Shown: positions 41,171 through 64,000 of the stretch, piece by piece
Layout of the letters: every line of letters begins with the position of its first letter
Numbering within the stretch: position 1 is the first letter of the stretch
From: Ranitomeya imitator
Taxonomy: Eukaryota
Direction of reading: 5' to 3'
Assembly: GCF_032444005.1 (NCBI RefSeq)
Contig: NC_091283.1
Span: forward strand, 825,406,001 to 825,470,000
Length of the DNA: 64,000 nt
Program-made: the position numbers and the translations under genes
Notes under the pieces: model-generated
What the model was told of the DNA's origin: nothing
Databases searched by the model: none
Seen by the model: the letters and a program-made list of their open reading frames with translations, nothing else

Positions 41171-41329
41171 ATAATCAATCATCACTACAACGCGCCGGCA
41201 TAAAGTCTGTCGTGAAGAATGAACCTATCACCCCTTGGCGTGTTAGCGGGGTGAAGGGATTATTTGTTTCTTTTTATCTCCTTTTGTAGGCAAAAGGGAT
41301 GCCCGATGGAGAGTGATTTTTAAGAAGAG

Positions 41330-42185
41330 ACACAATGGGGAATAACTATTATTAGGAGGCACAAAGGGGGTCATTATTATTAGTTATCAGGAGACATGAT
41401 GGGGGTCATTATTATAAGATGGCACAATGGGGGGTCACTATTATAAGAAGGCACAATGGGAGGTCATTATTATAAGATGGCACAATGGGGGGTCATTATT
41501 ATCAGTTATCAGGAGGCACGATGGAGGCCATTATTATAAGATGGCACAATGGTGGGTCATTATTATAAGAAGGCACAATGGGGGGTCATTATTATAAGGA
41601 GACGCAATGGGGGGGTCATTATTATAAAAAGGCACAATGGGAGGCCATTATTATCAGTTATCAGGAAGCACAGTGGGGGTCATTATTATAAGGAGACGCA
41701 ATGGGGGGTCATTATTATAAGGAGACGCAATGGGGGGTCATTATTATAAGAAGGCACAATGGGAGGCCATTATTATCAGTTATCAGGAAGCACAGTGGGG
41801 GTCATTATAAGGAGACGCAATGGGGGGTCATTATTATAAGAAGGCACAATAGGGTGTCATTATTATAAGGGAACACCATGGGGGGGTCATTATTATAAGG
41901 GAACACCATGGGGGGGTCGTTATTATAAGGAGGCGCAATGGGGGGTCGTTATTATAAGAAGGCACAATAGGGTGTCATTATTATAAGGAGACACCTTGGG
42001 GGGTGATTATTGTAAGGAGACACCTTGGGGGGTGATTATTATAAGAAGGCACAATGGGGGTCATTATTATAAGAAGGCACAATGGGGGTCATTATTGGTC
42101 ATTATTATAAGGAGACACCATGAGGGGGTCATTATTATAACAAGGCATTGTCAAGGGATCATAAGTATAAGGAGGCACACTAGAG
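41330..42185. repeat. ~29-bp minisatellite (GGGGGGTCATTATTATAAGGAGGCACAAT) with 37-38 bp variants
   Basis: About 28 degenerate tandem units read directly, ending at the hAT terminus. Confidence 0.92.
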
Positions 42186-42192
42186 TCATAAC

Positions 42193-42325
42193 TAGTGTTG
42201 AGCGATACCTTCCGATATCGGAAAGTATCGGTATCGGTTTGGATCGGCCGATATTCAAAAAATATCGGATATCGCCGATACCGATACCCGATCCCAATGC
42301 AAGTCAATGGGACCAAAATATCGGA
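42193..42325. promoter_or_regulatory. hAT terminal inverted repeat and subterminal motif cluster
   Basis: About ten (T)ATCGG/CCGAT(A) motifs in both orientations within 135 bp. Short subterminal repeats are the known transposase-binding sites in hAT elements such as Ac, Tol2 and Hermes. Confidence 0.75.
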
Positions 42326-43254
42326 ATTAAAATAAACCCTTTCTTTCCTTGTAGGTTCATTCTACCTGAAGGAAAACAACTAAGAATAATGTAGGATGTA
42401 TGGGGGAGGTGGCGGAGACATTAAAGGCAATGAGGATTAGTCCAATCAAATAGAATAGCATGTTTTTTTTTTTTTTTTAAAGAAGTTCGGATTGAAAAAG
42501 ATATTGAGTATGTAAATTTTTTTTATTTTGTCAGATATTGATGTTTCACTATTCCACGCCCTTCCCCTTCTTTTTTTTCTTTTTTTTTTTTTTCTTTTCC
42601 CACACTTTCATCTTCATCATCATCAGCATCCTTGACATCAACTTCTTCACCTTATTCATCTTCTTCTTCATCTTCTACCTATTTTTTTTTTTATTACATT
42701 CTTCATATTCATTTTCTTCAACTATTATTATTCTTCCTATTCTACATATTCTTTTTATTCCACTGTTATTATTCTTCCTATTCTACTTCTTCATCATATT
42801 CTCATTTGTGACAGGCATTCCCGTAGTTGTTATCTATAAAAGTTGGAAGATTACACCTTCCGTTCTGCCAGTCACAAAAGTTACATTTGTCCGCGTTCAG
42901 TTTGGCCTGCAGCATCAGGCTTTATCCAGGGGCACCACGAGGAGGAACGGACTCACCCCCATACACTGCTTAGTCTTCTTCTGCATATAATTTAGATAAT
43001 ATCTTTTGCTCTGATATTAAGTCTTATGCTTAATGTTCTTCTGCTCTTTGTTCTGCAGCCTCTTGTTCTTCTGCTTCTCGGTCTTCCATGTTGTCGTCTC
43101 CAGGGTCTTCGTCTCCAGTGTCGTCATCTCCGCCGTCGTCGTCTCAGCCGTCGTCGTCTCCGCCGTCGTCGTCGTCGTCGTCATCGGGGTGGTCTTCCGG
43201 GTCGTCGTCATCGGGGTGGTCTTCCGGGTTGTCGACGTTAGGGTCTTCAACTTG

Positions 43255-43860
43255 GAAATGTAGCAGAAGGTACAAGAAGGCTGAGAAAATGCCAAGAACC
43301 AGCTGATGGAACTGGAACTCGGATGGCTACCCGAAGGTTCAAGAGCCTATGGAACTACCGAGGACCAGCTGACGTTACTGGAACCCGGTTACTAAGCAGG
43401 AGGTACCCGTGCTAAAAAGCACTACCAAGGACCGCCTGACGTTGGCGGAACTCGGATACCCAGAAGGAGGCACCTAAGCCAAAGGCTCTGCCCGGAACCA
43501 GATGACGTTACTGGAACCAGGATGGGGAGCAGAAGGTACAAGAGCAAAAGACACTGCCGAGAACCAGCTGACGGTACTGGAACCCGGATGGGTAGCCGAA
43601 TGTCCAAGAGCCAATGGAACTACCAAGGACCAGCTGACGTTACTGGAACCCGGTTACTAAGCAGGAGGTACCCGTGCCTGAAAGCACTACCAAGGACCAC
43701 CTGACATTGGTGGAACTTGGATACCCAGAAGGAGGCACCTAAGCCAAAGGCTCTGCCCGGAACCAGCTGACGGTACTGGAACCAGGATGGGGAGCAGAAG
43801 GTACAAGAGCAAAAGACACTGCCGAGAACCAGCTGACGGTGCTGGAACCAGGTGGTGGAC
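43255..43860. repeat. ~66-bp monomer array arranged as a ~265-bp tetramer
   Basis: Motif GAACCAGCTGACG(G/T)TRCTGGAACC every 65-68 bp. Spacers 1-4 recur as spacers 5-8 (43296 vs 43561). Confidence 0.9.
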
Positions 43861-46800
43861 CCGAAGGCCCACAGGAGAGGAGAGAACAGCTAGGCCGCGA
43901 GGCAGCCGCAGTTACCGAACCCCAACAGTCCTACAGGGGGAGCTGGGCCTACTGGCACTACAGAACCAGCCTTGACTACCAGTTCACGCAGCCCACATAG
44001 GAAGCTCCTAAACTGGAGGCACCCTGGAGTTGGCTAACTCGACCGCCCCACGACGGGGCAAGCATAGGCGTCTCAGTGAAGTTGACACAACCCGGAAACA
44101 GCTGACGGTGCTGAAACCAGGCTTGGCACGAGGGAGTACCTGTGACAAGAACACTGCCGAGAACCAGCTGGCGGTGCTGGAACCCGGATGCGTTGCCCCA
44201 GTGTGCAAGAGCCAATGGCACGACCGAGGACCAGCTGACGGTGCTGGAACCCGGTTACTAAGCTGTAGGTGCCCGCGCTTAAAAGCACTACCAAGGACCG
44301 CCTGGCGTTGGCGGAACTCGGATACCCAGGAGGAGGCACCTAAGCCAAAGGCTCGGCCCGGAACCAGCTGACGGTGCTGGAACCAGGTGGTGGACCCCAA
44401 GGCCCACAGGAGAGGAGAGAACAGCTAGGCCGCGAGGCAGCCGCAGTTACCGAACCCCAACAGTCCTACAGGGGGAGCTGGGCCTACTGGCACTACAGAA
44501 CCAGCCTTGACTACCAGTTCACGCAGCCCACATAGGAAGCTCCTAAACTGGAGGCACCCTGGAGTTGGCTAACTCGACCGCCCCACGACGGGGCAAGCAT
44601 AGGCGTCTCAGTGAAGTTGACACAACCCGGAAACAGCTGACGGTGCTGAAACCAGGCTTGGCACGAGGGAGTACCTGTGACAAGAACACTGCCGAGAACC
44701 AGCTGGCGGTGCTGGAACCCGGATGCGTTGCCCCAGTGTGCAAGAGCCAATGGCACGACCGAGGACCAGCTGACGGTGCTGGAACCCGGTTACTAAGCTG
44801 TAGGTGCCCGCGCTTAAAAGCACTACCAAGGACCGCCTGGCGTTGGCGGAACTCGGATACCCAGGAGGAGGCACCTTAGCCAAAGGCTCGGCCCGGAACC
44901 AGCTGACGGTGCTGGAACCAGGTGGTGGACCCGAAGGCCCACAGGAGAGGAGAGAACAGCTAGGCCGCGAGGCAGCCGCAGTTACCGAACCCCAACAGTC
45001 CTACAGGGGGAGCTGGGCCTACTGGCACTACAGAACCAGCCTTGACTACCAGTTCACGCAGCCCACATAGGAAGCTCCTAAACTGGAGGCACCCTGGAGT
45101 TGGCTAACTCGACCGCCCCACGACGGGGCAAGCATAGGCGTCTCAGTGAAGTTGACACAACCCGGAAACAGCTGACGGTGCTGAAACCAGGCTTGGCACG
45201 AGGGAGTACCTGTGACAAGAACACTGCCGAGAACCAGCTGGCGGTGCTGGAACCCGGATGCGTTGCCCCAGTGTGCAAGAGCCAATGGCACGACCGAGGA
45301 CCAGCTGACGGTGCTGGAACCCGGTTACTAAGCTGTAGGTGCCCGCGCTTAAAAGCACTACCAAGGACCGCCTGGCGTTGGCGGAACTCGGATACCCAGG
45401 AGGAGGCACCTAAGCCAAAGGCTCGGCCCGGAACCAGCTGACGGTGCTGGAACCAGGTGGTGGACCCCAAGGCCCACAGGAGAGGAGAGAACAGCTAGGC
45501 CGCGAGGCAGCCGCAGTTACCGAACCCCAACAGTCCTACAGGGGGAGCTGGGCCTACTGGCACTACAGAACCAGCCTTGACTACCAGTTCACGCAGCCCA
45601 CATAGGAAGCTCCTAAACTGGAGGCACCCTGGAGTTGGCTAACTCGACCGCCCCACGACGGGGCAAGCATAGGCGTCTCAGTGAAGTTGACACAACCCGG
45701 AAACAGCTGACGGTGCTGAAACCAGGCTTGGCACGAGGGAGTACCTGTGACAAGAACACTGCCGAGAACCAGCTGGCGGTGCTGGAACCCGGATGTGTTG
45801 CCCCAGTGTGCAAGAGCCAATGGCACGACCGAGGACCAGCTGACGGTGCTGGAACCCGGTTACTAAGCTGTAGGTGCCCGCGCTTAAAAGCACTACCAAG
45901 GACCGCCTGGCGTTGGCGGAACTCGGATACCCAGGAGGAGGCACCTTAGCCAAAGGCTCGGCCCGGAACCAGCTGACGGTGCTGGAACCAGGTGGTGGAC
46001 CCCAAGGCCCACAGGAGAGGAGAGAACAGCTAGGCCGCGAGGCAGCCGCAGTTACCGAACCCCAACAGTCCTACAGGGGGAGCTGGGCCTACTGGCACTA
46101 CAGAACCAGCCTTGACTACCAGTTCACGCAGCCCACATAGGAAGCTCCTAAACTGGAGGCACCCTGGAGTTGGCTAACTCGACCGCCCCACGACGGGGCA
46201 AGCATAGGCGTCTCAGTGAAGTTGACACAACCCGGAAACAGCTGACGGTGCTGAAACCAGGCTTGGCACGAGGGAGTACCTGTGACAAGAACACTGCCGA
46301 GAACCAGCTGGCGGTGCTGGAACCCGGATGCGTTGCCCCAGTGTGCAAGAGCCAATGGCACGACCGAGGACCAGCTGACGGTGCTGGAACCCGGTTACTA
46401 AGCTGTAGGTGCCCGCGCTTAAAAGCACTACCAAGGACCGCCTGGCGTTGGCGGAACTCGGATACCCAGGAGGAGGCACCTTAGCCAAAGGCTCGGCCCG
46501 GAACCAGCTGACGGTGCTGGAACCAGGTGGTGGACCCCAAGGCCCACAGGAGAGGAGAGAACAGCTAGGCCGCGAGGCAGCCGCAGTTACCGAACCCCAA
46601 CAGTCCTACAGGGGGAGCTGGGCCTACTGGCACTACAGAACCAGCCTTGACTACCAGTTCACGCAGCCCACATAGGAAGCTCCTAAACTGGAGGCACCCT
46701 GGAGTTGGCTAACTCGACCGCCCCACGACGGGGCAAGCATAGGCGTCTCAGTGAAGTTGACACAACCCGGAAACAGCTGACGGTGCTGAAACCAGGCTTG

Positions 46801-49547
46801 GCACGAGGGAGTACCTGTGACAAGAACACTGCCGAGAACCAGCTGGCGGTGCTGGAACCCGGATGCGTTGCCCCAGTGTGCAAGAGCCAATGGCACGACC
46901 GAGGACCAGCTGACGGTGCTGGAACCCGGTTACTAAGCTGTAGGTGCCCGCGCTTAAAAGCACTACCAAGGACCGCCTGGCGTTGGCGGAACTCGGATAC
47001 CCAGGAGGAGGCACCTTAGCCAAAGGCTCGGCCCGGAACCAGCTGACGGTGCTGGAACCAGGTGGTGGACCCCAAGGCCCACAGGAGAGGAGAGAACAGC
47101 TAGGCCGCGAGGCAGCCGCAGTTACCGAACCCCAACAGTCCTACAGGGGGAGCTGGGCCTACTGGCACTACAGAACCAGCCTTGACTACCAGTTCACGCA
47201 GCCCACATAGGAAGCTCCTAAACTGGAGGCACCCTGGAGTTGGCTAACTCGACCGCCCCACGACGGGGCAAGCATAGGCGTCTCAGTGAAGTTGACACAA
47301 CCCGGAAACAGCTGACGGTGCTGAAACCAGGCTTGGCACGAGGGAGTACCTGTGACAAGAACACTGCCGAGAACCAGCTGGCGGTGCTGGAACCCGGATG
47401 CGTTGCCCCAGTGTGCAAGAGCCAATGGCACGACCGAGGACCAGCTGACGGTGCTGGAACCCGGTTACTAAGCTGTAGGTGCCCGCGCTTAAAAGCACTA
47501 CCAAGGACCGCCTGGCGTTGGCGGAACTCGGATACCCAGGAGGAGGCACCTAAGCCAAAGGCTCGGCCCGGAACCAGCTGACGGTGCTGGAACCAGGTGG
47601 TGGACCCGAAGGCCCACAGGAGAGGAGAGAACAGCTAGGCCGCGAGGCAGCCGCAGTTACCGAACCCCAACAGTCCTACAGGGGGAGCTGGGCCTACTGG
47701 CACTACAGAACCAGCCTTGACTACCAGTTCACGCAGCCCACATAGGAAGCTCCTAAACTGGAGGCACCCTGGAGTTGGCTAACTCGACCGCCCCACGACG
47801 GGGCAAGCATAGGCGTCTCAGTGAAGTTGACACAACCCGGAAACAGCTGACGGTGCTGAAACCAGGCTTGGCACGAGGGAGTACCTGTGACAAGAACACT
47901 GCCGAGAACCAGCTGGCGGTGCTGGAACCCGGATGCGTTGCCCCAGTGTGCAAGAGCCAATGGCACGACCGAGGACCAGCTGACGGTGCTGGAACCCGGT
48001 TACTAAGCTGTAGGTGCCCGCGCTTAAAAGCACTACCAAGGACCGCCTGGCGTTGGCGGAACTCGGATACCCAGGAGGAGGCACCTTAGCCAAAGGCTCG
48101 GCCCGGAACCAGCTGACGGTGCTGGAACCAGGTGGTGGACCCGAAGGCCCACAGGAGAGGAGAGAACAGCTAGGCCGCGAGGCAGCCGCAGTTACCGAAC
48201 CCCAACAGTCCTACAGGGGGAGCTGGGCCTACTGGCACTACAGAACCAGCCTTGACTACCAGTTCACGCAGCCCACATAGGAAGCTCCTAAACTGGAGGC
48301 ACCCTGGAGTTGGCTAACTCGACCGCCCCACGACGGGGCAAGCATAGGCGTCTCAGTGAAGTTGACACAACCCGGAAACAGCTGACGGTGCTGAAACCAG
48401 GCTTGGCACGAGGGAGTACCTGTGACAAGAACACTGCCGAGAACCAGCTGGCGGTGCTGGAACCCGGATGCGTTGCCCCAGTGTGCAAGAGCCAATGGCA
48501 CGACCGAGGACCAGCTGACGGTGCTGGAACCCGGTTACTAAGCTGTAGGTGCCCGCGCTTAAAAGCACTACCAAGGACCGCCTGGCGTTGGCGGAACTCG
48601 GATACCCAGGAGGAGGCACCTTAGCCAAAGGCTCGGCCCGGAACCAGCTGACGGTGCTGGAACCAGGTGGTGGACCCCAAGGCCCACAGGAGAGGAGAGA
48701 ACAGCTAGGCCGCGAGGCAGCCGCAGTTACCGAACCCCAACAGTCCTACAGGGGGAGCTGGGCCTACTGGCACTACAGAACCAGCCTTGACTACCAGTTC
48801 ACGCAGCCCACATAGGAAGCTCCTAAACTGGAGGCACCCTGGAGTTGGCTAACTCGACCGCCCCACGACGGGGCAAGCATAGGCGTCTCAGTGAAGTTGA
48901 CACAACCCGGAAACAGCTGACGGTGCTGAAACCAGGCTTGGCACGAGGGAGTACCTGTGACAAGAACACTGCCGAGAACCAGCTGGCGGTGCTGGAACCC
49001 GGATGCGTTGCCCCAGTGTGCAAGAGCCAATGGCACGACCGAGGACCAGCTGACGGTGCTGGAACCCGGTTACTAAGCTGTAGGTGCCCGCGCTTAAAAG
49101 CACTACCAAGGACCGCCTGGCGTTGGCGGAACTCGGATACCCAGGAGGAGGCACCTAAGCCAAAGGCTCGGCCCGGAACCAGCTGACGGTGCTGGAACCA
49201 GCTGGTGGACCCGAAGGCCCACAGGAGAGGAGAGAACAGCTAGGCCGCGAGGCAGCCGCAGTTACCGAACCCCAACAGTCCTACAGGGGGAGCTGGGCCT
49301 ACTGGCACTACAGAACCAGCCTTGACTACCAGTTCACGCAGCCCACATAGGAAGCTCCTAAACTGGAGGCACCCTGGAGTTGGCTAACTCGACCGCCCCA
49401 CGACGGGGCAAGCATAGGCGTCTCAGTGAAGTTGACACAACCCGGAAACAGCTGACGGTGCTGAAACCAGGCTTGGCACGAGGGAGTACCTGTGACAAGA
49501 ACACTGCCGAGAACCAGCTGGCGGTGCTGGAACCCGGATGCGTTGCC
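43830..49547. repeat. 535-bp tandem array, ~10.7 copies, >99% identical
   Basis: Identical ORF calls recur at 44030, 44565 ... 49380 (period exactly 535). Confidence 0.98.
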
Positions 49548-49549
49548 TT

Positions 49550-52500
49550 GCCTATTAAAGATTGTCTTCCTAGAGCCCCAACTAGCGGTGTTGGAGCAAA
49601 GGGTAAGCAGGGGGAGATGAGTGTAGGCCGAAGCCTGCACTGGAGGCAGCTTTGTGTCTGCGTTGCGTTTGCAGGACACTTTGCCGGCTACACACTGGGG
49701 GAACAGCTGGCGTTGCTGAACCCCACTAACACAATGGCGTGTGTTTTTATCTGTGCAGCTAGCACTTGCGGGCAAAAACTTGCGATGTTAGAGCCCGTGT
49801 TGAAGCAGGAGGAGGAGGAGAGGAGCAGAGTGTAGACCGAAGCCTAGTTGAACCAATTTCAAAGGAAACCTTTAACCCCCCCCTCAGGTGTTACAAAGTA
49901 CAAGAGACACACCTTGTGCAGTATTAATGCTGCACAAGTGAAAGGTTGCTCTATTAATTTGTCTACTTGCACACGCTGAATGAAAGACATACACAATTTA
50001 CCCCATTCTACAGTCAAACTGTCATGTTGGCCGGTGCGGTGCTGATCCCTTCTCGCATGCCGCGGCCATGAGGCTGCACAGTCTGAAGAAGGCGGAAGGA
50101 GATGAGTTAAGACAGGCGAAGATATGCACTGCTCGTGCCCATCAATCACACCCTCGCAGTCAAAATAATTAAGACAACGAGGAGCATTTTATTCAGGCAG
50201 GGCGGACGAACAGGCGCAAGTAGCCAACCAATGATGTCAGAAGACGGGAAGCGCTACCAAGGGGGGTGCTGCGTATCATTAGAAAGGAAAGTCACACCTC
50301 AGGGACAGTGGAATGGTCTCAAAGAGACACATTTTGTACGTGTTGAGTTCCACGTGGGCAAGGAGAAAACGTCAGCCACCTTGTACAAATGCAGCAGTAC
50401 TGCTGTACAAGGTGGCTGTTATACATAGAAACACCTGGGGGTGGTGGCCAGGCTCCCTTCAATTTCAGTTCATGTGCCTGCGTGGCGTTTGCAGGTCACG
50501 TTGCAAGCTGCACAGCAGGGGAACAGCTGGCGGTGCTGAACCCCACTAACACATTGGCTGGTGTTTTTCTCTGTGCAGCTAGCATGTCCGGGCAGAAACT
50601 GGCGTTGTTTGAGCCCAGGGTCAGCAGGAGGAGGAGAGGAGCAAAGTGTAGGCCGAAGCCTGCACTGGTGGCAGCTTTTGTTCTGTTGTGCCAGCGTGGC
50701 TTGTGCTGGACACGTTGCCGACTACACAGCAGGGGAACAGCTGGCGGTGCTGAACCCCACTAACACATTGGCTGGTGTTTTTCTCTGTGCAGCTAGCATT
50801 TCCGGGCAAAAACTAGCGGTGTTTGAGCCCAGGGTCAGCAGGAGGAGTAGAGGAGCAGAGTGTTGGCCAAAGCCTAGTTGAACCAATTTCAAAGGTTACC
50901 TTTAACCCCCCCCTCAGGTGTTGCAAGGTACAAGAGCCACACCTTGAACAGCATTATTGATGCACAAGTCAAAGGTTGCTCTATTTAATTTTGCTCCTTG
51001 CACACGCTGAATTAAACACGTACACTATTTAGCCCATTATACTGTCAAACAGTAGTGGAGGCGTGACTACTAGTCTTTTTAAGGAGACGCAGCACAGGTG
51101 TACAAATTTACACCTAGGTGCTGTGCGCAGATTCCTTACCGTTGTTATTTGCAGTACAGGAAACTGCGCTCTTGTGTTATCCCTTGGCAATACCCTGTTA
51201 GTGCAGGCCGTCTCATGACCTCATTTCATGTTGGCCGGTGCGGTTAACGATGGCCATAAATCCCAGACCCACAGTGGCTTTTCCTAAAGTCACACTGCGG
51301 TGCTGGGATTCGTGGCCTTGTGCAGTAAATATGTTCGCCGCTCACACATGTCCTTACACCTGCTTCAGACTGGGCGGCCTCAGCTGATCCCTTATCGCAT
51401 GCCGCGGCCATGAGGCCGCACAGTCAGAAGAAGGCGGAAGGAGGGGAGTGAAAACAGGGGAACATATGCACTGCTCGTGCCCATCAATCACACCCTCGCA
51501 GTCAAAATATATGAGACAACGGGGGGCGTTGTGTCGGGCAGGGGGGACGCACAGGCACAGCCAGCCAACCAATGATGTCAGGAGACGGGCAGCGCTAACA
51601 ATGGGGGTGCTGCGTGTCATTAAAAAGGAAAGTCACACCTCAGGGACATTGTAATGGTCTGTAATGAGACACATTTTGTACTTGTTGAGTTCCACGTGTG
51701 CAAGGAGAAAAAGTCAGCCACCTTGTACAAATGCAGCAGTACTGCTGTACAAGGTGGCTGTTATACATAGAAACACCTGGGGGGGTGGGGGGCAGGCTCC
51801 CTTCAATTTCAGTTCATGTGCCTGCGTGGCGTTTGCAGGTCACGTTGCAAGCTACACAGCAGGGGAACAGCTGGCGTTGCTGAACCCCACTGACACATTG
51901 ACTGGTGTTTTTCTCTGTGCAGATTGCATGTCCGGGCAAAAACTAGCGGTGTTAGAGCCCAGGGTCAGCAGGAGGAGGAGGAGAGGAGCAAAGTGTAGGC
52001 CGAAGCCTGCACTGGTGGCAGCTTTTGGTCGGTTGTGCCAGCGTGGCTTGTGCTGGACACGATGCCGGCTACACAGCGGGGGAACAGCTGGCGGTGCTGA
52101 ACCACACTAACACATTGGCTGGTGTTTTTCTCTGTGCAGCTAGCATGTCCGGGCAGAAACTGGCGTTGTTTGAGCCCAGGGTCAGCAGGAGGAGGAGAGG
52201 AGCAAAGTGTAGGCCGAAGCCTGCACTGGTGGCAGCTTTTGTTCTGTTGTGCCAGCGTGGCTTGTGCTGGACACGTTGCCGACTACACAGCAGGGGAACA
52301 GCTGGCGGTGCTGAACCCCACTAACACATTGGCTGGTGTTTTTCTCTGTGCAGCTAGCATTTCCGGGCAAAAAATAGCGGTGTTTGAGCCCAGGGTCAGC
52401 AGGAGGAGTAGAGGAGCAGAGTGTAGGCCGAAGCCTAGTTGAACCAATTTCAAAGGTTACCTTTAACCCCCCCCTCAGGTGTTGCAAGGTACAAGAGCCA

Positions 52501-55500
52501 CACCTTGAACAGCATTAATGATGCACAAGTCAAAGGTTGCTCTATTTAATTTTGCTCCTTGCACACGCTGAATTAAACACGTACACTATTTAGCCCATTA
52601 TACTGTCAAACAGTTGTGGAGGCGTGACTTGTCTTTTTAACGAGACGCAGCACAGGTGTCAAAATTTGCACCTAGGTACTGGGCGCAGATTCCTGAGCGT
52701 TGTTATTTGCTGTACAGGAGTCTGCGCTCTTGTGTTATCCCTTGGCAATACCCTGTTAGTGCAGGCCGTCTCATGACCTCATTTCATGTTGGCCGGTGCG
52801 GTTAACGATGGCCATAAATCCCAGACCCACAGTGGCTTTTCCTAAAGTCACACTGCGGTGCTGGGATTCGTGGCCTTGTGCAGTAAATATGTTCGCCGCT
52901 CACACATGTCCTTACACCTGCTTCAGACTGGGCGGCCTCTGCTGATCCCTTATCGCATGCCGCGGCCATGAGGCCGCACAGTCAGAAGAAGGCGGAAGGA
53001 GGGGAGTGAAAACAGGGGAACATATGCACTGCTCGTGCCCATCAATCACACCCTCGCAGTCAAAATATATGAGACAACGGGGGGCGTTGTGTCGGGCAGG
53101 GGGGACGCACAGGCACAGCCAGCCAACCAATGATGTCAGGAGACGGGCAGCGCTAACAATGGGGGTGCTGCGTGTCATTACAAAGGAAAGTCACACCTCA
53201 GGGACATTGTAATGGTCTCTAATGAGACACATTTTGTACGTGTTGAGTTCCACGTGGGCAAGGAGAAAAAGTCAGCCACCTCGTACAAATGCAGCAGTAC
53301 TGCTGTACAAGGTGGCTGATATACATAGAAACACCTGTGGGTGGGGGGCAGGCTCCCTTCAATTTCAGTTCATGTGCCTGCGTGGCGTTTGCAGGTCACG
53401 TTGCAAGCTACACAGCAGGGGAACAGCTGGCGTTGCTGAACCCCACTAACACATTGGCTGGTGTTTTTCTCTGTGCAGCTAGCATGTCCGGGCAGAAACT
53501 GGCGTTGTTTGAGCCCAGGGTCAGCAGGAGGAGGAGAGGAGCAAAGTGTAGGCCGAAGCCTGCACTGGTGGCAGCTTTTGGTCGGTTGTGCCAGCGTGGC
53601 TTGTGCTGGACACGTTGCCGACTACACAGCAGGGGAACAGCTGGCGGTGCTGAACCCCACTAACACATTGGCTGGTGTTTTTCTCTGTGCAGCTAGCATT
53701 TCCGGGCAAAAACTAGCGGTGTTTGAGCCCAGGGTCAGCAGGAGGAGTAGAGGAGCAGAGTGTAGGCCGAAGCCTAGTTGAACCAATTTCAAAGGTTACC
53801 TTTAACCCCCCCCTCAGGTGTTGCAAGGTACAAGAGCCACACCTTGTGCAGCATTAATGCTGCACAAGTAAAAGGTTGCTCTATTTGTTTTGCTCCTTGC
53901 ACACGCTGACTAAAACACGTACACTATTTAGCCCATTATACTGTCAAACAGTTGTGGAGGCGTGACTTGTCTTTTTAACGAGACGCAGCACAGGTGTCAA
54001 AATTTGCACCTAGGTACTGGGCGCAGATTCCTGAGCGTTGTTATTTGCTGTACAGGAGTCTGCGCTATTGTGATCCCTTGGCCATGCGCTGTGAGCGCTT
54101 CCTGTCTTCTGACCTCATTTCATGTCGGCCGTTGCGGTTAGCGATGGACATGAATCCCAGACCCACAGTGTGTTTTTAAAAAATCACACTGCGGTGCTGG
54201 GATTCGTGCCCTGGTGCACTAAATATGTTTGCCGCTCACACATGTCCTTACACCTGCTTCAGACTGGGCGGCCTCATCTGATCCCTTATCGCCTGCCGCG
54301 GCCATGAGGACACCCAGTCTGAAGAAGGCGGAAGGAGATGAGTGAACACAGGCAAACATATGCACTGCACATGCCCATCAATCACACCCTCGCTGTCCAA
54401 AAAAATAAGACACCGAGGGCCGTTGTTTCGAGCAGGGGAGATGCACAGGCGCAGCCAGCTAACCAATGATGTCAAAAGACGGGCAGCGCTAACAAGGGTG
54501 GTGCTGCGTGTCATTACAAAGGAAAGTCACACCTCAGGGACATTGTAATGGTCTCTAATGAGACACATTTTGTACGTGTTGAGTTCCACGTGGGCAAGGA
54601 GAAAAAGTCAGCCACCTCGTACAAATGCAGCAGTACTGCTGTACAAGGTGGCTGATATACATAGAAACACCTGTGGGTGGGGGGCAGGCTCCCTTCAATT
54701 TCAGTTCATGTGCCTGCGTGGCGTTTGCAGGTCACGTTGCAAGCTACACAGCAGGGGAACAGCTGGCGTTGCTGAACCCCACTGACACATTGACTGGTGT
54801 TTTTCTCTGTGCAGATTGCATGTCCGGGCAAAAACTAGCGGTGTTAGAGCCCAGGGTCAGCAGGAGGAGGAGGAGAGGAGCAAAGTGTAGGCCGAAGCCT
54901 GCACTGGTGGCAGCTTTTGGTCGGTTGTGCCAGCGTGGCTTGTGCTGGACACGATGCCGGCTACACAGCGGGGGAACAGCAGGCGTTGCTGAACCCCACT
55001 AACACATTGGCTGGTGTTTTTCTCTGTGCAGCTAGCATGTCCGGGCAGAAACTGGCGTTGTTTGAGCCCAGGGTCAGCAGGAGGAGGAGAGGAGCAAAGT
55101 GTAGGCCGAAGCCTGCACTGGTGGCAGCTTTTGGTCGGTTGTGCCAGCGTGGCTTGTGCTGGACACGTTGCCGACTACACAGCAGGGGAACAGCTGGCGG
55201 TGCTGAACCCCACTAACACATTGGCTGGTGTTTTTCTCTGTGCAGCTAGCATTTCCGGGCAAAAACTAGCGGTGTTTGAGCCCAGGGTCAGCAGGAGGAG
55301 TAGAGGAGCAGAGTGTAGGCCGAAGCCTAGTTGAACCAATTTCAAAGGTTACCTTTAACCCCCCCCTCAGGTGTTGCAAGGTACAAGAGCCACACCTTGT
55401 GCAGCATTAATGCTGCACAAGTAAAAGGTTGCTCTATTTGTTTTGCTCCTTGCACACGCTGACTAAAACACGTACACTATTTAGCCCATTATACTGTCAA

Positions 55501-58500
55501 ACAGTTGTGGAGGCGTGACTTGTCTTTTTAACGAGACGCAGCACAGGTGTCAAAATTTGCACCTAGGTACTGGGCGCAGATTCCTGAGCGTTGTTATTTG
55601 CTGTACAGGAGTCTGCGCTATTGTGATCCCTTGGCCATGCGCTGTGAGCGCTTCCTGTCTTCTGACCTCATTTCATGTCGGCCGTTGCGGTTAGCGATGG
55701 ACATGAATCCCAGACCCACAGTGTGTTTTTAAAAAATCACACTGCGGTGCTGGGATTCGTGCCCTGGTGCACTAAATATGTTTGCCGCTCACACATGTCC
55801 TTACACCTGCTTCAGACTGGGCGGCCTCATCTGATCCCTTATCGCCTGCCGCGGCCATGAGGACACCCAGTCTGAAGAAGGCGGAAGGAGATGAGTGAAC
55901 ACAGGCAAACATATGCACTGCACATGCCCATCAATCACACCCTCGCTGTCCAAAAAAATAAGACACCGAGGGCCGTTGTTTCGAGCAGGGGAGATGCACA
56001 GGCGCAGCCAGCTAACCAATGATGTCAAAAGACGGGCAGCGCTAACAAGGGTGGTGCTGCGTGTCATTACAAAGGAAAGTCACACCTCAGGGACATTGTA
56101 ATGGTCTCTAATGAGACACATTTTGTACGTGTTGAGTTCCACGTGGGCAAGGAGAAAAAGTCAGCCACCTCGTACAAATGCAGCAGTACTGCTGTACAAG
56201 GTGGCTGATATACATAGAAACACCTGTGGGTGGGGGGCAGGCTCCCTTCAATTTCAGTTCATGTGCCTGCGTGGCGTTTGCAGGTCACGTTGCAAGCTAC
56301 ACAGCAGGGGAACAGCTGGCGTTGCTGAACCCCACTGACACATTGACTGGTGTTTTTCTCTGTGCAGATTGCATGTCCGGGCAAAAACTAGCGGTGTTAG
56401 AGCCCAGGGTCAGCAGGAGGAGGAGGAGAGGAGCAAAGTGTAGGCCGAAGCCTGCACTGGTGGCAGCTTTTGGTCGGTTGTGCCAGCGTGGCTTGTGCTG
56501 GACACGATGCCGGCTACACAGCGGGGGAACAGCAGGCGGTGCTGAACCCCACTAACACATTGGCTGGTGTTTTTCTCTGTGCAGCTAGCATGTCCGGGCA
56601 GAAACTGGCGTTGTTTGAGCCCAGGGTCAGCAGGAGGAGGAGAGGAGCAAAGTGTAGGCCGAAGCCTGCACTGGTGGCAGCTTTTGGTCGGTTGTGCCAG
56701 CGTGGCTTGTGCTGGACACGTTGCCGACTACACAGCAGGGGAACAGCTGGCGGTGCTGAACCCCACTAACACATTGGCTGGTGTTTTTCTCTGTGCAGCT
56801 AGCATTTCCGGGCAAAAACTAGCGGTGTTTGAGCCCAGGGTCAGCAGGAGGAGTAGAGGAGCAGAGTGTAGGCCGAAGCCTAGTTGAACCAATTTCAAAG
56901 GTTACCTTTAACCCCCCCCTCAGGTGTTGCAAGGTACAAGAGCCACACCTTGTGCAGCATTAATGCTGCACAAGTAAAAGGTTGCTCTATTTGTTTTGCT
57001 CCTTGCACACGCTGACTAAAACACGTACACTATTTAGCCCATTATACTGTCAAACAGTTGTGGAGGCGTGACTTGTCTTTTTAACGAGACGCAGCACAGG
57101 TGTCAAAATTTGCACCTAGGTACTGGGCGCAGATTCCTGAGCGTTGTTATTTGCTGTACAGGAGTCTGCGCTATTGTGATCCCTTGGCCATGCGCTGTGA
57201 GCGCTTCCTGTCTTCTGACCTCATTTCATGTCGGCCGTTGCGGTTAGCGATGGACATGAATCCCAGACCCACAGTGTGTTTTCAAAAAATCACACTGCGT
57301 GGCTGGGATTCGTGGCCTTGTGCAGTAAATAGGTTTGCCGCTTACACATGTCCTTACACCTGCTCCAGACTGGGCGGCCTCAGCTGATCCCTTATCGCCT
57401 ACCACGGCCAGGAGGCCGCACAGTCTGAAGAAGGCGGAAGGAGATGAGTTAAGACAGGCGAACATATGCACTGCTCGTGCCCATAAACCACACCCTCGCT
57501 GACAAAATAAATATGACAACGAGGGGCGTTGTTTCTAGCAGGGCGGATGCACAGGCGCAGCCAGCTAACCATGATGACAAAAGACGGGAAACGCTACCAA
57601 GGGGGGTGCTGCGTATCATTACAAAGGAAAGTCACACCTCAGGGACAGTGGAATGGTCTCAATGAGACACATTTTGTACGTGTTGAGTTCCACGTGGGCA
57701 AGGAGAAAAAGTCAGCCACCTTGTACAAATGCAGCAGTACTGCTGTACTAGGTGGCTGTTATACATAGAAACACCTGGGGGGGTGGGGCCAGGTTCCCTT
57801 TTAATTTCAGTTCCTGTGCCTGCATGGCGTTTGCAGGTCACGTTGCCGGCTACACAGCAGGGGAACAGCTGGCGTTGCTGAACCCCACTAACACATTGGC
57901 TGGTGTTTTTCTCTGTGCAGCTAGCACTTCCGGGCAAAAACTAGCGGTGTTTGAGCCCAGGGTCAGCAGGAGGAGGAGAGGAGCAGAGTGTAGGCCGAAG
58001 CCTGCACTGGTGGCAGCTTTTGTTCTGTTGTGCCAGCGTGGCTTGTGCTGGACACGTTGCCGACTACACAGCAGGGGAACAGCTGGCGGTGCTGAACCCC
58101 ACTGACACATCACCTAGTGTTTTTTTCTGTGTAGACAACACTTCCAGGTGGCAACTGACAGTGTTGAAACCCAGGGAATCAAAGAGGAGCAGAGTGTAGG
58201 CCGAAGCCTGCAGTGGAGCAAGTTGAAAGGGAACCTTTAACCCCCCCCCCAGGCATTTGTTGCTGAAAGAGCCATCTTGTACAGCAGTAATACTGCACAT
58301 GGAAAATGGTGGCTCCGAAAATTATGCTCCTTGCAAACGCTGAAGTACACACTCATATAATGTGTCCCCTCACACCGTCAAACCATCCCGGAAGTGGGAC
58401 TTTCCTTTGTAATGTGACACAGCACAGCCGTCATTCCAACCCCCTTGGTGCCGGGCACCACCTCCTCAACGTTGTTTGGTTCTGTCACGGAGCCCGCACT

Positions 58501-60960
58501 GTAATGTTATCCCTTGGCCATGCACAGTTAGCGGTGCCCGTCTTCTGACATCATGTAGGTGTCAGGCTGGCAGTGCCTGTGCGTCCAAGCTGCCCGAGAT
58601 CCAACCTTGCAGTGTCATCTAATGTAGTCCCACTGCGGGCCAGGGATCCATGGGCATGCGCAGTGCATATCATCGCCTCTCACTCACCTCCTTCCTGCTT
58701 CTTCAGACTGTGCGGCGTCACGGCCGTGGCATGCTATTAGGGATCAGCTGACGCCGCCTAGTCTGAAGAAGCGTGAAGAAGGGGAGTGAGAGGCTAGTAT
58801 ATGCACTGCGCATGGCCATGGATACCAGGCCCACTGTGGGATCACATTAGACGACACTGCGAGGTGTGATTTCGGGCAGCGTGGACGCACAGGCGCAGCC
58901 AGGACGACAACAAATGATGTCAGAGGACGGGCAGCGCAAACTGTGCATGGCCAAGGGATAACATAACAGCGCAGGGTCCATGACGGAATCAAACAACGCT
59001 AAGGAGGCAGCGCACGGTGCCAAGGGGGTAGCAATGACGGCTGTGCTGCGTCACATTACAAAGGAAAGTCCCACCTCCGGGACGGTTGGACGGTGTGAGG
59101 GGACACATTACATGAGTGTGTAGTTCAGCGTTTGCAAGGAGCATAATTTCAAGAGCGACCTTTCCCTTGTGCAGTATTAGTGCTGCACATGGTGGCTCTT
59201 TCAGTAACAAACGCCTAGGGGGGGGGGGGACAGGTCCCCTTACATTTTAGTTGTGCCAGCGTGGCGGTCGCATGACACGTTGCCGGATACACAGCTGGGG
59301 ATCAGCTGACGTTACTGAACCCCAATAACAGAGGAGCGACTGTTGACTGTGCACACAGCACTTCCAGGCACCAACTGGCGGTGTTAGAGCCCAGGGACAG
59401 CAGGAGGAGCAGATTGGAGGTATTGCCGCACACACAGCTGGGGATCAGCTGACGTTACTGAACCCCAATAACAGAGGAGCGACTGTTGACTGTGCACACA
59501 GCACTTCCAGGCACCAACTGGCGGTGTTAGAGCCCAGGGACAGCAGGAGGAGCAGATTGGAGGTATTGCCGCACACACAGCTGGGGATCAGCTGACGTTA
59601 CTGAACCCCAATAACAGAGGAGCGACTGTTGACTGTGCACACAGCACTTCCAGGCACCAACTGGCGGTGTTAGAGCCCAGGGACAGCAGGAGGAGCAGAG
59701 GAACAGAGTGTAGGCCGAAGCCTGATTGGAGCAAGTTGAAAGGAAACCTTTAACCCCCCCCCCAAGACGTTTGTAGCTGAAAGAGCCATGTTGTGCAGCA
59801 CTAAGGATGCAAAAGGAAAAGGTTGCTCTTTTAATTATGCTCCTTGCAAACACCGAAGTAAACACTAAAAATGTGTCCCTTTATACCGTTAAACCGTTCC
59901 GGAGGTGCGAATTTCCTTCGTAATGGGACACAGCACAGCTGTCATTCCTATCCCCTTGATGCCGTGCGCTGCCTCCTCAGCGTTGTTTTAAGCTGCCACG
60001 GAGCCTGCGCTGTTCTGTTAGCCCTTGGCCATGCCCAATTAGCGCTGCCTGTCTTCTGACATAATTTGGTGTCAGGCTGTCAGTGCCTGTGCGTCCACGC
60101 TGCTCCAGATCCCACCTCGCAGTCTCATCTAACGTAATCCCACTGCGGGCCTTGGAACCATGGGCATGCACAGTGCATAACCTCGACTCTCACTCCCCTC
60201 CTTCCCTCTTCTTCAGACTGTGCGGTGTCACGGCCGTGGCATGCTAGGGATCAGCTGACGGCGCACAGTCTAAAGAAGGCGGAGGGAAATGAGCGAGAGC
60301 CCGAGGGGAAGATATGCACTGCGCATGCCCATGGATCCCAGGCCCGCAGTGTGACTCAATCAGAAGACACTGCGAGGCGGGATCTCGGGCACCGCGGCCG
60401 CACAGGCGCAGCCAGCCTGACACCAAATTATGTCAGAAGACAGGCAGCGCAAATAGGGCATGCCCAAGGGATAACAGAACAGCGCAGGCTCCGTGACAGC
60501 TTAAAACAACGCTGAGGAGGCAGCGCATGGCACCAAGGGGGTAGGAATGACGGCTGTGCTGCGTCACATTACGAAGGAAAGTCCCAGCTCCGGGACGGTA
60601 TAACGGTATCAGTGAACACATTTTATAAGTGTTAAGTTCTGCGTGTGCAAAGAGCTAAAAAAAAAGAGCTACCTTTTCCTTGTGCAGCATTACTGCTGCA
60701 CAAGATGGCTCTTTCAGTAACAAACGACGGGGGGGGGGGGGGGACAGGTTCCCTTACATTTAGGTTGTTGTGCCAGCGTGGCGGTCGCAGGACACATTGC
60801 CGGCTACACAGCTGGGGATCAGCTGACGTTACTGAAACCCAATAACACTGGGTCGTATGTTTTTACTGTGCAGCCTGCACTTCTGAGCCGCAACTGGCGG
60901 TGTTGGAGCCCAGGAATAGCAGTTCAGGTGGTAGAAAGATGAACACAGCAGGAGACCTGG
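49550..60960. repeat. Composite array of eight ~0.6-1.0 kb foldback cassettes separated by 1-3 copies of ~215-bp or 143-bp motif subunits
   Basis: Cassette left ends AGG(T/G/A)(T/A)ACCTTTAACCCCCC at 49862, 50892, 52453, 53792, 55345, 56898, 58228 and 59741 (intervals 1030-1561 bp). Confidence 0.9.
59289..59700. repeat. 143-bp unit x3, essentially identical
   Basis: ACAGCTGGGGATCAGCTGACGTTACTGAACCCC at 59291, 59434 and 59577. Confidence 0.95.
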
Positions 60961-60975
60961 ATGACACCCAATTAC

Positions 60976-63900
60976 TTAATCAGGCAGAGGAGTGGCAAAT
61001 TCCTGCGAGATCCAGGCCTGGTTCATTTTCAGGAAAGTAAGCCGGTCAACGTTATCGGAGGATAGTCGCATGCGACGGTCTGTTAGTACACCACCTGCGG
61101 CACTAAAGACACGTTCCGATAAGACACTAGCCGCAGGGCAAGCCAGCACCTCCAATGCATACTGGCTTAGCTCTGGCCATGTATCCAGCTTAGAGACCCA
61201 AAACTTGAACGGGGAAGAGCCGTCTGGGAGTACAGTAAGAGGGCAAGCCATGTAGTCTGTCACCATCTGACGGAACCGTTGCCTCCTGCTGACTGGAGCC
61301 GCCGGTGATGGTGTAGACATTTGGGGCGGGCACACAAAAGTGTGCCAGAGTTGTGCCATACTGGGCTTGCCTTGGGCAGAGGCACTGCTTCTGCTCCCTC
61401 TTTGGGCAGAGCCTCCCCCACTGCCTCGACGCACTGAGCTGCTTTGTAAAGCACTAGCAGCACTCCTCTCAGTTGGACAGGAGAAGATGATGGAATTCAC
61501 CAGTGTGTCGTGGTACTCCCGCAATTTACGCTCCCGGGTCAACGCAGGGATGAGGTTTTGGACGTTGTCCCGGTAGCGAGGATCGAGGAGGGTGAACACC
61601 CAATAATCAGGCATGTTGAGAATGTGGTCGATGCGGCGGTCGTTTCTCAGGCACTGCAGCATGAAATCCACCATGTGCTGCAGAGTGCCAACCGGCCCAG
61701 AAACGCTGTCCCCTGCTTGAGACATGATCTCTGCCCGCTCGTCATCACCCCACCCTCGCTGTACACACTGACCACTGGACAATTGTGTCGCTCCCTCCTC
61801 TGGACGGAGCTCTTCCTCCTCCATTGACTCCTCCTCATCCTCCTCACAAATTGGCCCCTGCGTACCCCTTTGTGAGGAACCACGTGGCGCTGACTCTCCA
61901 GAAGCTGATGGAAAAGGTGACTCCTCATCCTCCACCTCTTCCACCACATCATCCCTTAACCCTTGCAAAGTTTGCTGAAGCAGGCAGATAAGGGGGACAG
62001 TCATGCTGACTAGTGCATCATCTGCACTTGCCATCCGCGTGGAATAATCAAAAGGACGCAAAACCTGGCAGACGTCCTTCATAGTGGCCCACTCTGTGGT
62101 TGTGAAGTCTGATCGGCGCTGACTGCGACTTCTTTGCGCCTGATGCAGCTGGTACTCCATAACTGCTTGCTGCTGCTCACACAACCGCTCCAACATATGT
62201 AACGTGGAATTCCACCGGGTAGGTAGGTCACATATGATGCGGTGTTCCGGAAGGCGGAATCGGCGCTGCAGAGCAGCAATGCGGGATCTGGCCAAGCTGG
62301 AACGCCGCAAGTGAGCACACTCTAGGCGGACCTTGTGCAGCAGGGCATCAAGATCCGGATAGTCCCTCAGAAAACTCTGCACAACCAAATTGAGCACATG
62401 TGCCAGACATGGGATGTGAGTGAGGTTGCCAAGGGCCAAAGCTGCCACCAGATTTCGGCCATTGTCACACACTACCATGCCTGGCTGGAGATTCGCTGGC
62501 AGTAACCACACATCGCTCTCCTGCTTTATGGCATTCCAGAGCTCCTGCGCTGTGTGGCTTCGATGCCCCAATGAAACTAGTTTCAAGACGGCCTGCTGAC
62601 GTTTGGCCACGGCTGTGCTCATGTCGGTCATAGGTAAACGTTCACGGGTCCATGTGGGGGTGGACTGTGACGGATCCTGCAGAGAGGAATCAGAGGAACT
62701 GGTGTAAGAGGAGGAGTCGATGCGTACAGACTGGATTCCTGCAATCCTTGGAGTGGGCAGGACACGTCCTGCGCCACTCGCACGATCTGTACCTGGCTCA
62801 ACAACATTAACCCAATGGGCAGTGAGGGAAACATATCGCCCCTGTCCATGCTGACTGGTCCACGCATCGGTGGTGAGGTGGACCTTGCTACTGACGGCGT
62901 TCAGTAGCGCATGTTTTATGTTTGCCTCAACATGCCTGTGCAGGGCAGGGACAGCCTGCCTGCTGAAGTAAAAGCGGCTGGGCACCTTGTACTGTGGGAC
63001 TGCCAATGCCATCAAGTCACGGAAGCTGTCAGTCTCCACCAGCCTGAACGAGAGCATTTCCAGGGACAACAGTTTGGCAATGCCTGCATTCAGAGCCTGT
63101 GCTCGGGGGTGGTTGGCCGAGAATGCCCGCCTTTTCTCCCATGCCTGTACTACCGATGGCTGTAGAGTAGACTGGGAGTGTGAGGATGACTGGGAAGGTG
63201 GTGCTGTGGGTGGAATTACACAAGGTCTCTGGGAGGAAGCCAAACCAGCTGTGCGTGAGCTGGAGGAAGAGGCAACACGAGCTGAAGAGGTGGTAGCTGC
63301 CGCTGTTGGTTGGCCTACATCTTCAGTGTGTTTCTGTAACTCCACCGCGTGCCTGGTCCGCACATGTTTCCACATATTTGTGGTATTGAGGTTGCTGACA
63401 TTTTTCCCTCTTTTTACTTTATGATGACACAGCTTGCATTTGACAAAACAAATGTCATCTGCAACTGTGTCAAAAAAGGACCAGGCACTGCAAGTCTTGG
63501 GAGCGCCCTTTTTGGCTTTGGAAAGAGACAGGCTCCTAACGGGTGCCAAAGTGGAGGCTACAGGCTCCGCAGTCTTCCCCCTCCCTCTCCCTCTTTGGCC
63601 CGTAAGAGGAAGCTCTTCCTCTGAGCTGCTCCCACCACCTTCCTGTTCCTCACGCCACGATGGGTCAAGGACCTCATCATCTCCACTACCCTCTGCCACC
63701 AACTGCTCCTCCTGGGTAGTCTCAGCAGCACAGTACGCACGAGAAAGCGGCACCTGAGTTTCATCATCAGATGCGTACTGCGCTGTGGTCACCGGAGGCA
63801 CTGGCCCACCTGCCTCTTCAGAGTCAGAGAGAAAAAGGTGTTGGGCATCACTGCACACTGCCTCTTCTTCCATTTCTCCAATGCTGCTTGGCTGGCCCCC

Positions 63901-64000
63901 TGTTTCCAAGCCAAGAGATTCAGAGAACAGAAGTAGAGACGGCTCCTGTCCTGGGCTCTCTGACTGCCTGGCCAATTTGGCAGGTGGTGAAGAGACAGAT
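60976..64000 (-). CDS. hAT transposase (BED finger, DDE, C-terminal dimerisation domain), ZBED4/ZBED6-like, 5' incomplete
   Basis: Stop-free for >1000 codons, and the frame stays open to the window edge. BED finger AWSFF...CKLC...TTNMWKHVRTRH. Catalytic motifs TTDAWT, VCDNG, CLAH, PTRWNST and SVLSERVFS. Confidence 0.95.
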   Translation of the reverse strand, partial: SVSSPPAKLARQSESPGQEPSLLLFSESLGLETGGQPSSIGEMEEEAVCSDAQHLFLSDSEEAGGPVPPVTTAQYASDDETQVPLSRAYCAAETTQEEQLVAEGSGDDEVLDPSWREEQEGGGSSSEEELPLTGQRGRGRGKTAEPVASTLAPVRSLSLSKAKKGAPKTCSAWSFFDTVADDICFVKCKLCHHKVKRGKNVSNLNTTNMWKHVRTRHAVELQKHTEDVGQPTAAATTSSARVASSSSSRTAGLASSQRPCVIPPTAPPSQSSSHSQSTLQPSVVQAWEKRRAFSANHPRAQALNAGIAKLLSLEMLSFRLVETDSFRDLMALAVPQYKVPSRFYFSRQAVPALHRHVEANIKHALLNAVSSKVHLTTDAWTSQHGQGRYVSLTAHWVNVVEPGTDRASGAGRVLPTPRIAGIQSVRIDSSSYTSSSDSSLQDPSQSTPTWTRERLPMTDMSTAVAKRQQAVLKLVSLGHRSHTAQELWNAIKQESDVWLLPANLQPGMVVCDNGRNLVAALALGNLTHIPCLAHVLNLVVQSFLRDYPDLDALLHKVRLECAHLRRSSLARSRIAALQRRFRLPEHRIICDLPTRWNSTLHMLERLCEQQQAVMEYQLHQAQRSRSQRRSDFTTTEWATMKDVCQVLRPFDYSTRMASADDALVSMTVPLICLLQQTLQGLRDDVVEEVEDEESPFPSASGESAPRGSSQRGTQGPICEEDEEESMEEEELRPEEGATQLSSGQCVQRGWGDDERAEIMSQAGDSVSGPVGTLQHMVDFMLQCLRNDRRIDHILNMPDYWVFTLLDPRYRDNVQNLIPALTRERKLREYHDTLVNSIIFSCPTERSAASALQSSSVRRGSGGGSAQRGSRSSASAQGKPSMAQLWHTFVCPPQMSTPSPAAPVSRRQRFRQMVTDYMACPLTVLPDGSSPFKFWVSKLDTWPELSQYALEVLACPAASVLSERVFSAAGGVLTDRRMRLSSDNVDRLTFLKMNQAWISQEFATPLPD

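Follow-up and report, generated by a model that had tools for sequence, protein, structure and literature searches.

The 64,000-nt stretch of the Ranitomeya imitator genome analyzed here (NC_091283.1 of assembly GCF_032444005.1, positions 825,406,001 to 825,470,000 of the forward strand; referred to as the window) carries, on its minus strand, a hAT transposon in which an intact transposase reading frame is followed by long tandem arrays. An earlier account of the window made from its letters (the sequence-only reading) had linked all of these arrays through one CAGCTG-core motif and proposed that they form a phased protein-binding array. We found that the conserved object is a small two-step hairpin and not a CAGCTG box. 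The arrays appear to consist of tandem copies of one 66- to 72-nt unit, in which a 29- to 31-nt two-tier stem-loop would be the constrained part; this stem-loop is predicted to form best on the minus strand, the sense strand of the transposase gene. The reading that we favor, at a probability of roughly 40%, is a multimerized RNA stem-loop in a long 3′ untranslated region (UTR) of the transposase message, offering its heptaloop and an internal U.U to an RNA-binding protein.

A two-tier hairpin is conserved across the arrays

The window was searched with nhmmer by using a profile of the 66-nt monomer, and a covariance model was run with filters off so that every position was scored. nhmmer detected 111 monomers, all on the plus strand and all within positions 43274 to 60929, with no other match to the profile in the 64 kb except one at an E value of 9.7. 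The covariance model gave 102 hits in a single orientation (43290 to 60915), and the loop pattern flanked by a perfect 4-bp stem occurred 81 times on the plus strand and 0 times on the minus strand. Both counts agree with the roughly 100 same-orientation copies of the sequence-only reading. All four motif versions that it quoted were recovered where it had placed them, one of them at 60814 to 60837, 139 bp past the stop codon.

The sequence-only reading had also described the motif as far more conserved than its surroundings and had suggested measuring conservation and CpG retention. This description was borne out. Between monomer types, identity was 0.77 in the loop, 0.62 to 0.66 in the stems, and 0.64 in the tail (0.62 to 0.77 over the core), compared with 0.34 to 0.39 in the flanks, which is near random. 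The conserved 7-nt loop reads T-R-R-C-G-K-T on the plus strand, and 107 of 111 monomers retain its CpG. CAGCTG, on the other hand, failed as a unifying core: only 66 of the 111 monomers have it at the stem/loop junction, where it is composed of the stem CAGC and the loop TG. The other 45 monomers have CGCCTG (11), AAACTA (8), AAACTG (5), CAACTG (5), TGCGTG (5), or other hexamers at this position. The case for an E box bound by basic helix-loop-helix (bHLH) factors is weak, and an E-box/bHLH cluster was rejected as the unifying feature, since 41% of monomers lack the hexamer.

The hairpin has a 4- to 5-bp inner helix, an internal loop, and a 4- to 6-bp outer helix, 29 to 31 nt in all. The internal loop is small and symmetric, and its central A.A (plus strand) is invariant. 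The outer helix accounts for two conserved parts of the 24-mer quoted in the sequence-only reading, its GAACCC tail and its GGGGAA/GAGAA head. Inner stems differ in sequence and yet are complementary: CCAGC/GCTGG, CCGCC/GGCGG, CCACC/GGTGG, and CAGC/GCTG, and further AAAC/GTTT, CAAC/GTTG, CCTGC/GCAGG, and TCAG/CTGA. Among 31 distinct cores, the inner-helix pairs at positions 8-20 (AU in 24, GC in 7) and 9-19 (GC in 14, AU in 9, CG in 8) were never unpaired. Covariation in the inner helix was 0.527, compared with 0.153 ± 0.026 in shuffles (0 of 500 reached the observed value) and at most 0.139 in slid registers, so that compensatory pairing, the mark of a structured cis-acting RNA, exceeded both kinds of control. 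In the 31 variants, nine (plus strand) or eight (minus strand) of 11 pairs were changed on both sides. One stem series includes its intermediate: CCAGC..GCTGG (50697), mismatched CCAGC..GCAGG (60779), and CCTGC..GCAGG (50483).

Half-sites that change in sequence and stay complementary fit base pairing rather than a dimeric site in double-stranded DNA. This bears on the possibility that the arrays are phased binding sites in duplex DNA, used by the element's own transposase through its BED finger, by a domesticated relative, or by a host bHLH protein at CAGCTG, with the effect that protein is concentrated on the element or chromatin is organized, as with CENP-B boxes in alpha satellite. The core is indeed conserved, regularly spaced, and CpG retaining; hAT transposases do use many short, repeated, BED-bound sites, well inside the ends (PMC10368747); and the loop core RCGG has CGG in common with the ATCGG repeats near the element end described below. 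However, a dimer that reads sequence would not tolerate arms that change in concert, and we regard duplex binding as unlikely. Thus, of the proposed phased protein-binding array, the constraint stands, as the conservation argues, and the E-box and dimeric duplex-site specifics are unsupported. A protein-binding array is possible, on RNA more likely than on duplex DNA.

Arrays fill the region between the transposase stop codon and the element's 3′ end

The features of the element are as follows, all on the minus strand.

42193 to 42320, minus strand: 3′ end of the hAT element with subterminal repeats ATCGG/CCGAT (10 copies in 128 bp)
42321 to 43261, minus strand: non-array 3′ region with minus-sense AATAAA at 42522, 42690, and 42754 and a GTC/GAC-rich tract at 43093 to 43244
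43262 to 43870, minus strand: older array A, nine 66- to 67-bp monomers (265-bp unit × 2.3), with a hairpin in each
43871 to 49540, minus strand: array A, a 535-bp higher-order unit in ~10.6 near-identical repeats
49541 to 58220, minus strand: array B, 214-bp units with hairpins B1, B2, and B3, broken up by ~1-kb foldback cassettes
59232 to 59700, minus strand: array C, a B1-type hairpin and then three 143-bp units, each with hairpins C1 and C2 (spacing, 69 and 74 bp)
60749 to 60929, minus strand: terminal unit adjoining the gene, with hairpins B1-type, T1, and T2
60976 to 63975, minus strand: intact hAT transposase reading frame with a BED zinc finger and hAT dimerization domain (first Met codon at 63873)

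Nearly all sequence from 47 bp past the transposase stop codon (60976 to 60978) down to 43262 is tandem array, and the hairpin nearest the gene, T2 (60881 to 60915), lies 61 to 95 nt past the stop. The arrays end 1.07 kb short of the element's 3′ end at 42193; its 5′ end lies beyond the window. As in other transposon-borne satellites, the monomers are arranged head to tail with higher-order periods (66/67, 265, 535, 214, and 143 bp), and a short dyad is present once per monomer, as in centromere-type dyad satellites.

The older part of array A includes the stem variants CCGCC/GGCGG and CCACC/GGTGG and variants with an innermost A.C pair. Each 535-bp unit contains five recognizable hairpin monomers and a degenerate stretch of 203 bp; a hairpin in this array, at 44155 to 44189, had the top covariance-model score (50.6 bits). 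Array B carries the stems CAGC/GCTG, AAAC/GTTT, CAAC/GTTG, and CCTGC/GCAGG. The sequence-only reading had derived the larger units as multiples of one monomer, and for two of them the arithmetic did not hold. The unit given as 215 bp, or 3 × 72, is a 214-bp unit whose hairpins stand at intervals of 45, 72, and 97 bp, and the 535-bp unit, given as 8 × 67, has only its five recognizable monomers and the 203 bp without detectable monomer homology. By eye, this 203-bp stretch (44406 to 44608, the same in each unit) shows remnants: a B2-like GAACAGCT...GAACCCC split by ~16 additional bases, a partnerless ACCAGC, and a small hairpin of another kind, GCCCC-acgac-GGGGC. They are spaced as three decayed monomers would be.

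Tandem duplication by itself accounts for the phasing and the single orientation. Only 4 variable sites were found among the ten 535-bp copies; a test of recent substitutions inside array A has no power with so few. Most of the ~100 copies are therefore very recent duplicates, and the informative sample is ~30 distinct variants of ~10 monomer types.

So young a set of copies is also what would be expected of a selfish or neutral satellite, in which replication template switching, or gene conversion from one monomer to another, makes and mends the palindrome. Palindrome-bearing monomers would then amplify preferentially, through hairpin-promoted slippage or unequal exchange, with no selection on any product. 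Template switching is documented to produce multibase "compensatory" changes, and a single event can restore a stem (PMC8794818), and short dyad symmetries are common in satellites (PMC5889037). The 535-bp unit was amplified even with the motif lost from three slots. Template switching leaves unexplained, however, a constant 7-nt loop and A.A internal loop amid randomized flanks, and a 4- to 5-bp stem with a 7-nt loop would be ill suited to cruciform formation or slippage in duplex DNA. We judge this neutral origin, the chief rival of the RNA reading, to be somewhat improbable.

Several other repeats were seen nearby. Inside one cassette, at 58562 to 58586, there is a 5-bp-stem hairpin, CAGGC-TGGCAGT-GCCTG, and a TGTCAGT version lies at ~60070 to 60095 in a second cassette; both resemble the array hairpin with a decayed loop CpG, a likeness that may be due to chance or to shared origin. 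The GTC/GAC-rich tract between array A and the 3′ end region is of low complexity, with 15- and 27-bp repeats, and reads as an Asp-rich run in the minus sense. Just beyond the 3′ end of the element, at 41306 to 42136, is a tandem array with periods of 29, 58, and 122 bp.

The hairpin is predicted to form best on the transposase-sense strand

Given the two-tier structure, 85.2% of cells in the 31 variants are paired on the minus strand and 75.8% on the plus strand. The difference lies in the mismatches: non-Watson-Crick helix cells on the plus strand comprise 33 A.C and 2 G.T. Because A.C on the plus strand is G.U on the minus strand (31 G.U cells on minus versus 2 on plus), the mismatches favor the transposase-sense strand. 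Folding energies were compared with those of dinucleotide shuffles (100 for the minus strand of array A), with the following results.

Array A, fold z-score: minus strand, −4.85 (0 of 100 shuffles); plus strand, 0.00
Array B, fold z-score: minus strand, −2.03; plus strand, −0.89
Array C, fold z-score: minus strand, −4.34; plus strand, −1.30
31 distinct 35-nt cores, mean energy: minus strand, −14.2 kcal/mol; plus strand, −11.35 kcal/mol; shuffles, ~−7 kcal/mol
Consensus fold energy: minus strand, −8.6 kcal/mol; plus strand, −0.04 kcal/mol

The minus strand folded better than the plus strand in 27 of 31 cores, and in its minimum-energy fold every monomer formed the two-tier hairpin. The minus strand thus carries both G.U pairs and a stability beyond that of shuffled sequence, which together form a strand-specific signature. 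Such an asymmetry between strands is meaningless for a site in duplex DNA, and the neutral account does not explain why the tolerated mismatches nearly all pair as G.U on the sense strand.

The same structural evidence would suit a hairpin of single-stranded DNA formed by the minus strand, for example at a replication pause or an origin-like element, given that G.T is the least harmful DNA mismatch. Transposition of hAT elements proceeds without a single-stranded intermediate (an established mechanism; Hermes, PMC10368747), copies of the element lie in both orientations relative to replication, so that a fixed folding strand is hard to explain, and the stems are very short for DNA. We consider a DNA hairpin of this kind highly improbable.

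Transcript evidence and a possible role of the arrays in RNA

Sequencing runs were examined as Logan contigs, which carry no strand; four runs from four studies were RNA-like, their RNA nature being a guess. Contigs from all four contained the arrays. They spanned the last 1.2 to 1.4 kb of the open reading frame and 142 to 169 nt past the stop codon, through T2, with 0 differences from the window. The 3′ ends of the contigs, at 60807 to 60834, coincide with a 31-mer (60806 to 60836) that by eye is common to array C, and so they mark assembly breaks and not poly(A) sites. Of the four runs, three differed from the window mostly by A>G and T>C changes (89 of 125, 79 of 117, and 86 of 111 differences). 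These changes cluster in the foldback cassettes, at 59744 to 59824, 60127 to 60170, and 60454 to 60502, and the minus-sense 5′ neighbor of T>C sites was G in 0 of 16. CpG decay was rejected as their source, only 7 of 24 listed sites being in that context. The pattern looks like A-to-I editing, that is, hyper-editing by ADAR of double-stranded RNA formed by the cassettes, and such editing-like differences argue that the RNA-like runs really are RNA.

No minus-sense AATAAA or ATTAAA occurs within the arrays proper; these signals were found only in the inserted cassettes and at 42522 to 42754. Their absence from the arrays is weak evidence because the strand is A-poor. The arrays lie between the stop codon and a 3′ end region with poly(A) signals, which makes a multimerized cis-acting RNA stem-loop in the 3′ UTR the likeliest reading. 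Directly observed are the hairpin and its covariation, the asymmetry between strands, where the hairpins lie, and their occurrence in RNA-like assemblies.

From these we infer that selection acts on the RNA form, that the loop is read by a protein, and what sort of effect follows. The sense-strand unit would consist of an outer helix of 4 to 6 bp, an internal loop whose U.U is invariant, an inner helix of 4 to 5 bp, and an apical heptaloop, A-(C/A)-C-G-(C/U)-(C/U)-A. The array could then act as a multivalent platform for an RNA-binding protein that governs the stability, export, localization, or translation of the transposase message. In a more specific form of this proposal, which we rate as a long shot, the ~100 hairpins, all derived from one stem-loop, would have been assembled by a DNA transposon within its 3′ UTR as a multivalent RNA zip code or export element. 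Such an array could, for instance, deliver the transposase mRNA to the germ plasm or help it leave the nucleus even though the gene has no introns. If so, it would account for the success of this giant hAT in poison-frog genomes as an RNA-level adaptation in a cut-and-paste element, with satellite DNA as a by-product.

Several points weigh against a role in RNA. The G.U asymmetry represents only about 9 versus 2 independent events, and the arms are just 7.5% T on the plus strand. Singleton substitutions in three cassette-bearing units have a mild bias of the same sign (22:12), so part of the strand asymmetry may be mutational, as the neutral account would have it. The nine B1-type hairpins go against the trend, being more stable on the plus strand, where they have G.T. 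The fold z-scores are not independent of the G.U counts, the two being views of one fact, and they are inflated by tandem copies. The contigs break at the first repeated 31-mer, short of any long 3′ UTR, and the transcribed strand is not readable from strandless contigs of presumed RNA runs. The hairpin matches no Rfam family and has no known binder. In two relatives of the transposase with 53 to 54% protein identity (short contigs L001 and L002), the motif is absent from the 150 to 280 nt of 3′ flank at hand.

At E values up to 1, Rfam gave only subthreshold microRNA-like hits in foldback cassettes. They lie on both strands at 54142 to 54213 and 55695 to 55766, in the cassette-bearing span of array B, and score 25 to 33 bits against gathering scores of 53 to 84. 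A tRNA origin of the monomer was rejected (ARAGORN, 0 genes). Likenesses to a hammerhead core, a polymerase III B box, NF-I and CRE sites, and a Maf half-site were also rejected; each was partial by eye and not conserved across monomer types.

The element has a separate set of subterminal repeats and dendrobatid relatives

Subterminal repeats are the class of site usually bound by hAT transposases. At the 3′ end of the element, ATCGG/CCGAT occurs 10 times in 128 bp (42193 to 42320), in both orientations, compared with 0.6 per kb elsewhere in the window and 0 in the arrays. These repeats follow a TAGTGTTGAGCG-type terminus. They are probably the true transposase-binding subterminal repeats. The hairpin units were rejected as members of this class: they have a different motif and a single orientation and lie 1.07 to 18.7 kb from the 3′ end. 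The lack of ATCGG in the arrays likewise speaks against the arrays as duplex binding sites for the transposase, as do their one orientation and their distance of 1 to 19 kb from the end, both atypical of subterminal repeats.

A protein search identified relatives of the transposase in Ranitomeya, Dendrobates, Phyllobates, Anomaloglossus, and others, the closest proteins being dendrobatid; the exact protein encoded in the window is not on record. Over its C-terminal half, the transposase is 86% identical to a ZBED6-like gene model of Ranitomeya variabilis. This closest relative (P0001), annotated as a ZBED6-like isoform, also has a KRAB box, and KRAB zinc-finger models overlap it at the same place. 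The combination is probably a gene-model fusion, though it could be a real chimera.

Comparison with known systems

Satellites carried by DNA transposons are already known, as are short dyads in satellite monomers. The present analysis adds the two-tier structure with a measure of its covariation, the asymmetry between strands, the case against the E box, and the distinct ATCGG end repeats; no paper on hAT-borne satellites in frogs turned up in the literature library searched.

Examples of the first kind are Tetris of Drosophila virilis (PMC4079207) and the satellite-like arrays borne by a Helentron in oyster (PMC7492417). Like these, the frog arrays lie within a mobile element, with which they would travel, and are built of head-to-tail monomers grouped into higher-order units. 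Unlike them, they are carried by an autonomous hAT of the 20-kb class with an intact transposase. They also have one orientation, lie in the 3′ part of the element as it would be transcribed, and share a covarying stem-loop among three arrays (the papers on Tetris and the Helentron were not checked for stem-loops).

BED binding sites of Hermes are short, end proximal, and bidirectional (PMC10368747). The frog hairpin resembles hAT subterminal repeats in being a short motif, repeated many times, in a hAT that encodes a BED finger. Subterminal repeats of hAT elements, however, are 4 to 6 bp long and lie within ~100 to 300 bp of both ends in both orientations, as the ATCGG set of this element does at its end, whereas the hairpin units are 29 to 31 nt long, have one orientation, can be as far as 19 kb from the end, and show covariation. 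Dyads of <10 bp, found once per satellite monomer, have been read as DNA cruciforms at centromeres (PMC5889037). The frog monomers similarly have a short recurring dyad; they differ in belonging to arrays dispersed along with a transposon, in conserving the loop sequence, and in having a mismatch spectrum indicative of one strand.

Satellites borne by transposons are usually treated as passive cargo. Here, three arrays of one active-looking element share a stem-loop in which the loop is fixed, the stems covary, and the mismatches favor the sense strand. If this holds on independent copies, the cargo would be a selected RNA element of a cut-and-paste transposon. It would then offer a natural system for the multivalent action of an RNA hairpin and for the seeding of kilobases of satellite by a functional motif in a giant amphibian genome. 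If it fails there, the arrays would be a clean example of palindrome-preserving mutation that mimics selection on RNA.

Multimerized cis-acting RNA stem-loops are found in UTRs, as in the constitutive transport element of retroviruses, and Xenopus Xlsirt RNAs are made of repeated 79- to 81-nt units. The frog hairpin differs from these in having no Rfam match and in that its function, binder, and transcribed strand are predictions. As those systems are generally described, the level at which they are compared here, it would share with them short tandem structured units in a noncoding part of a transcript, with a conserved loop or internal loop on a variable stem.

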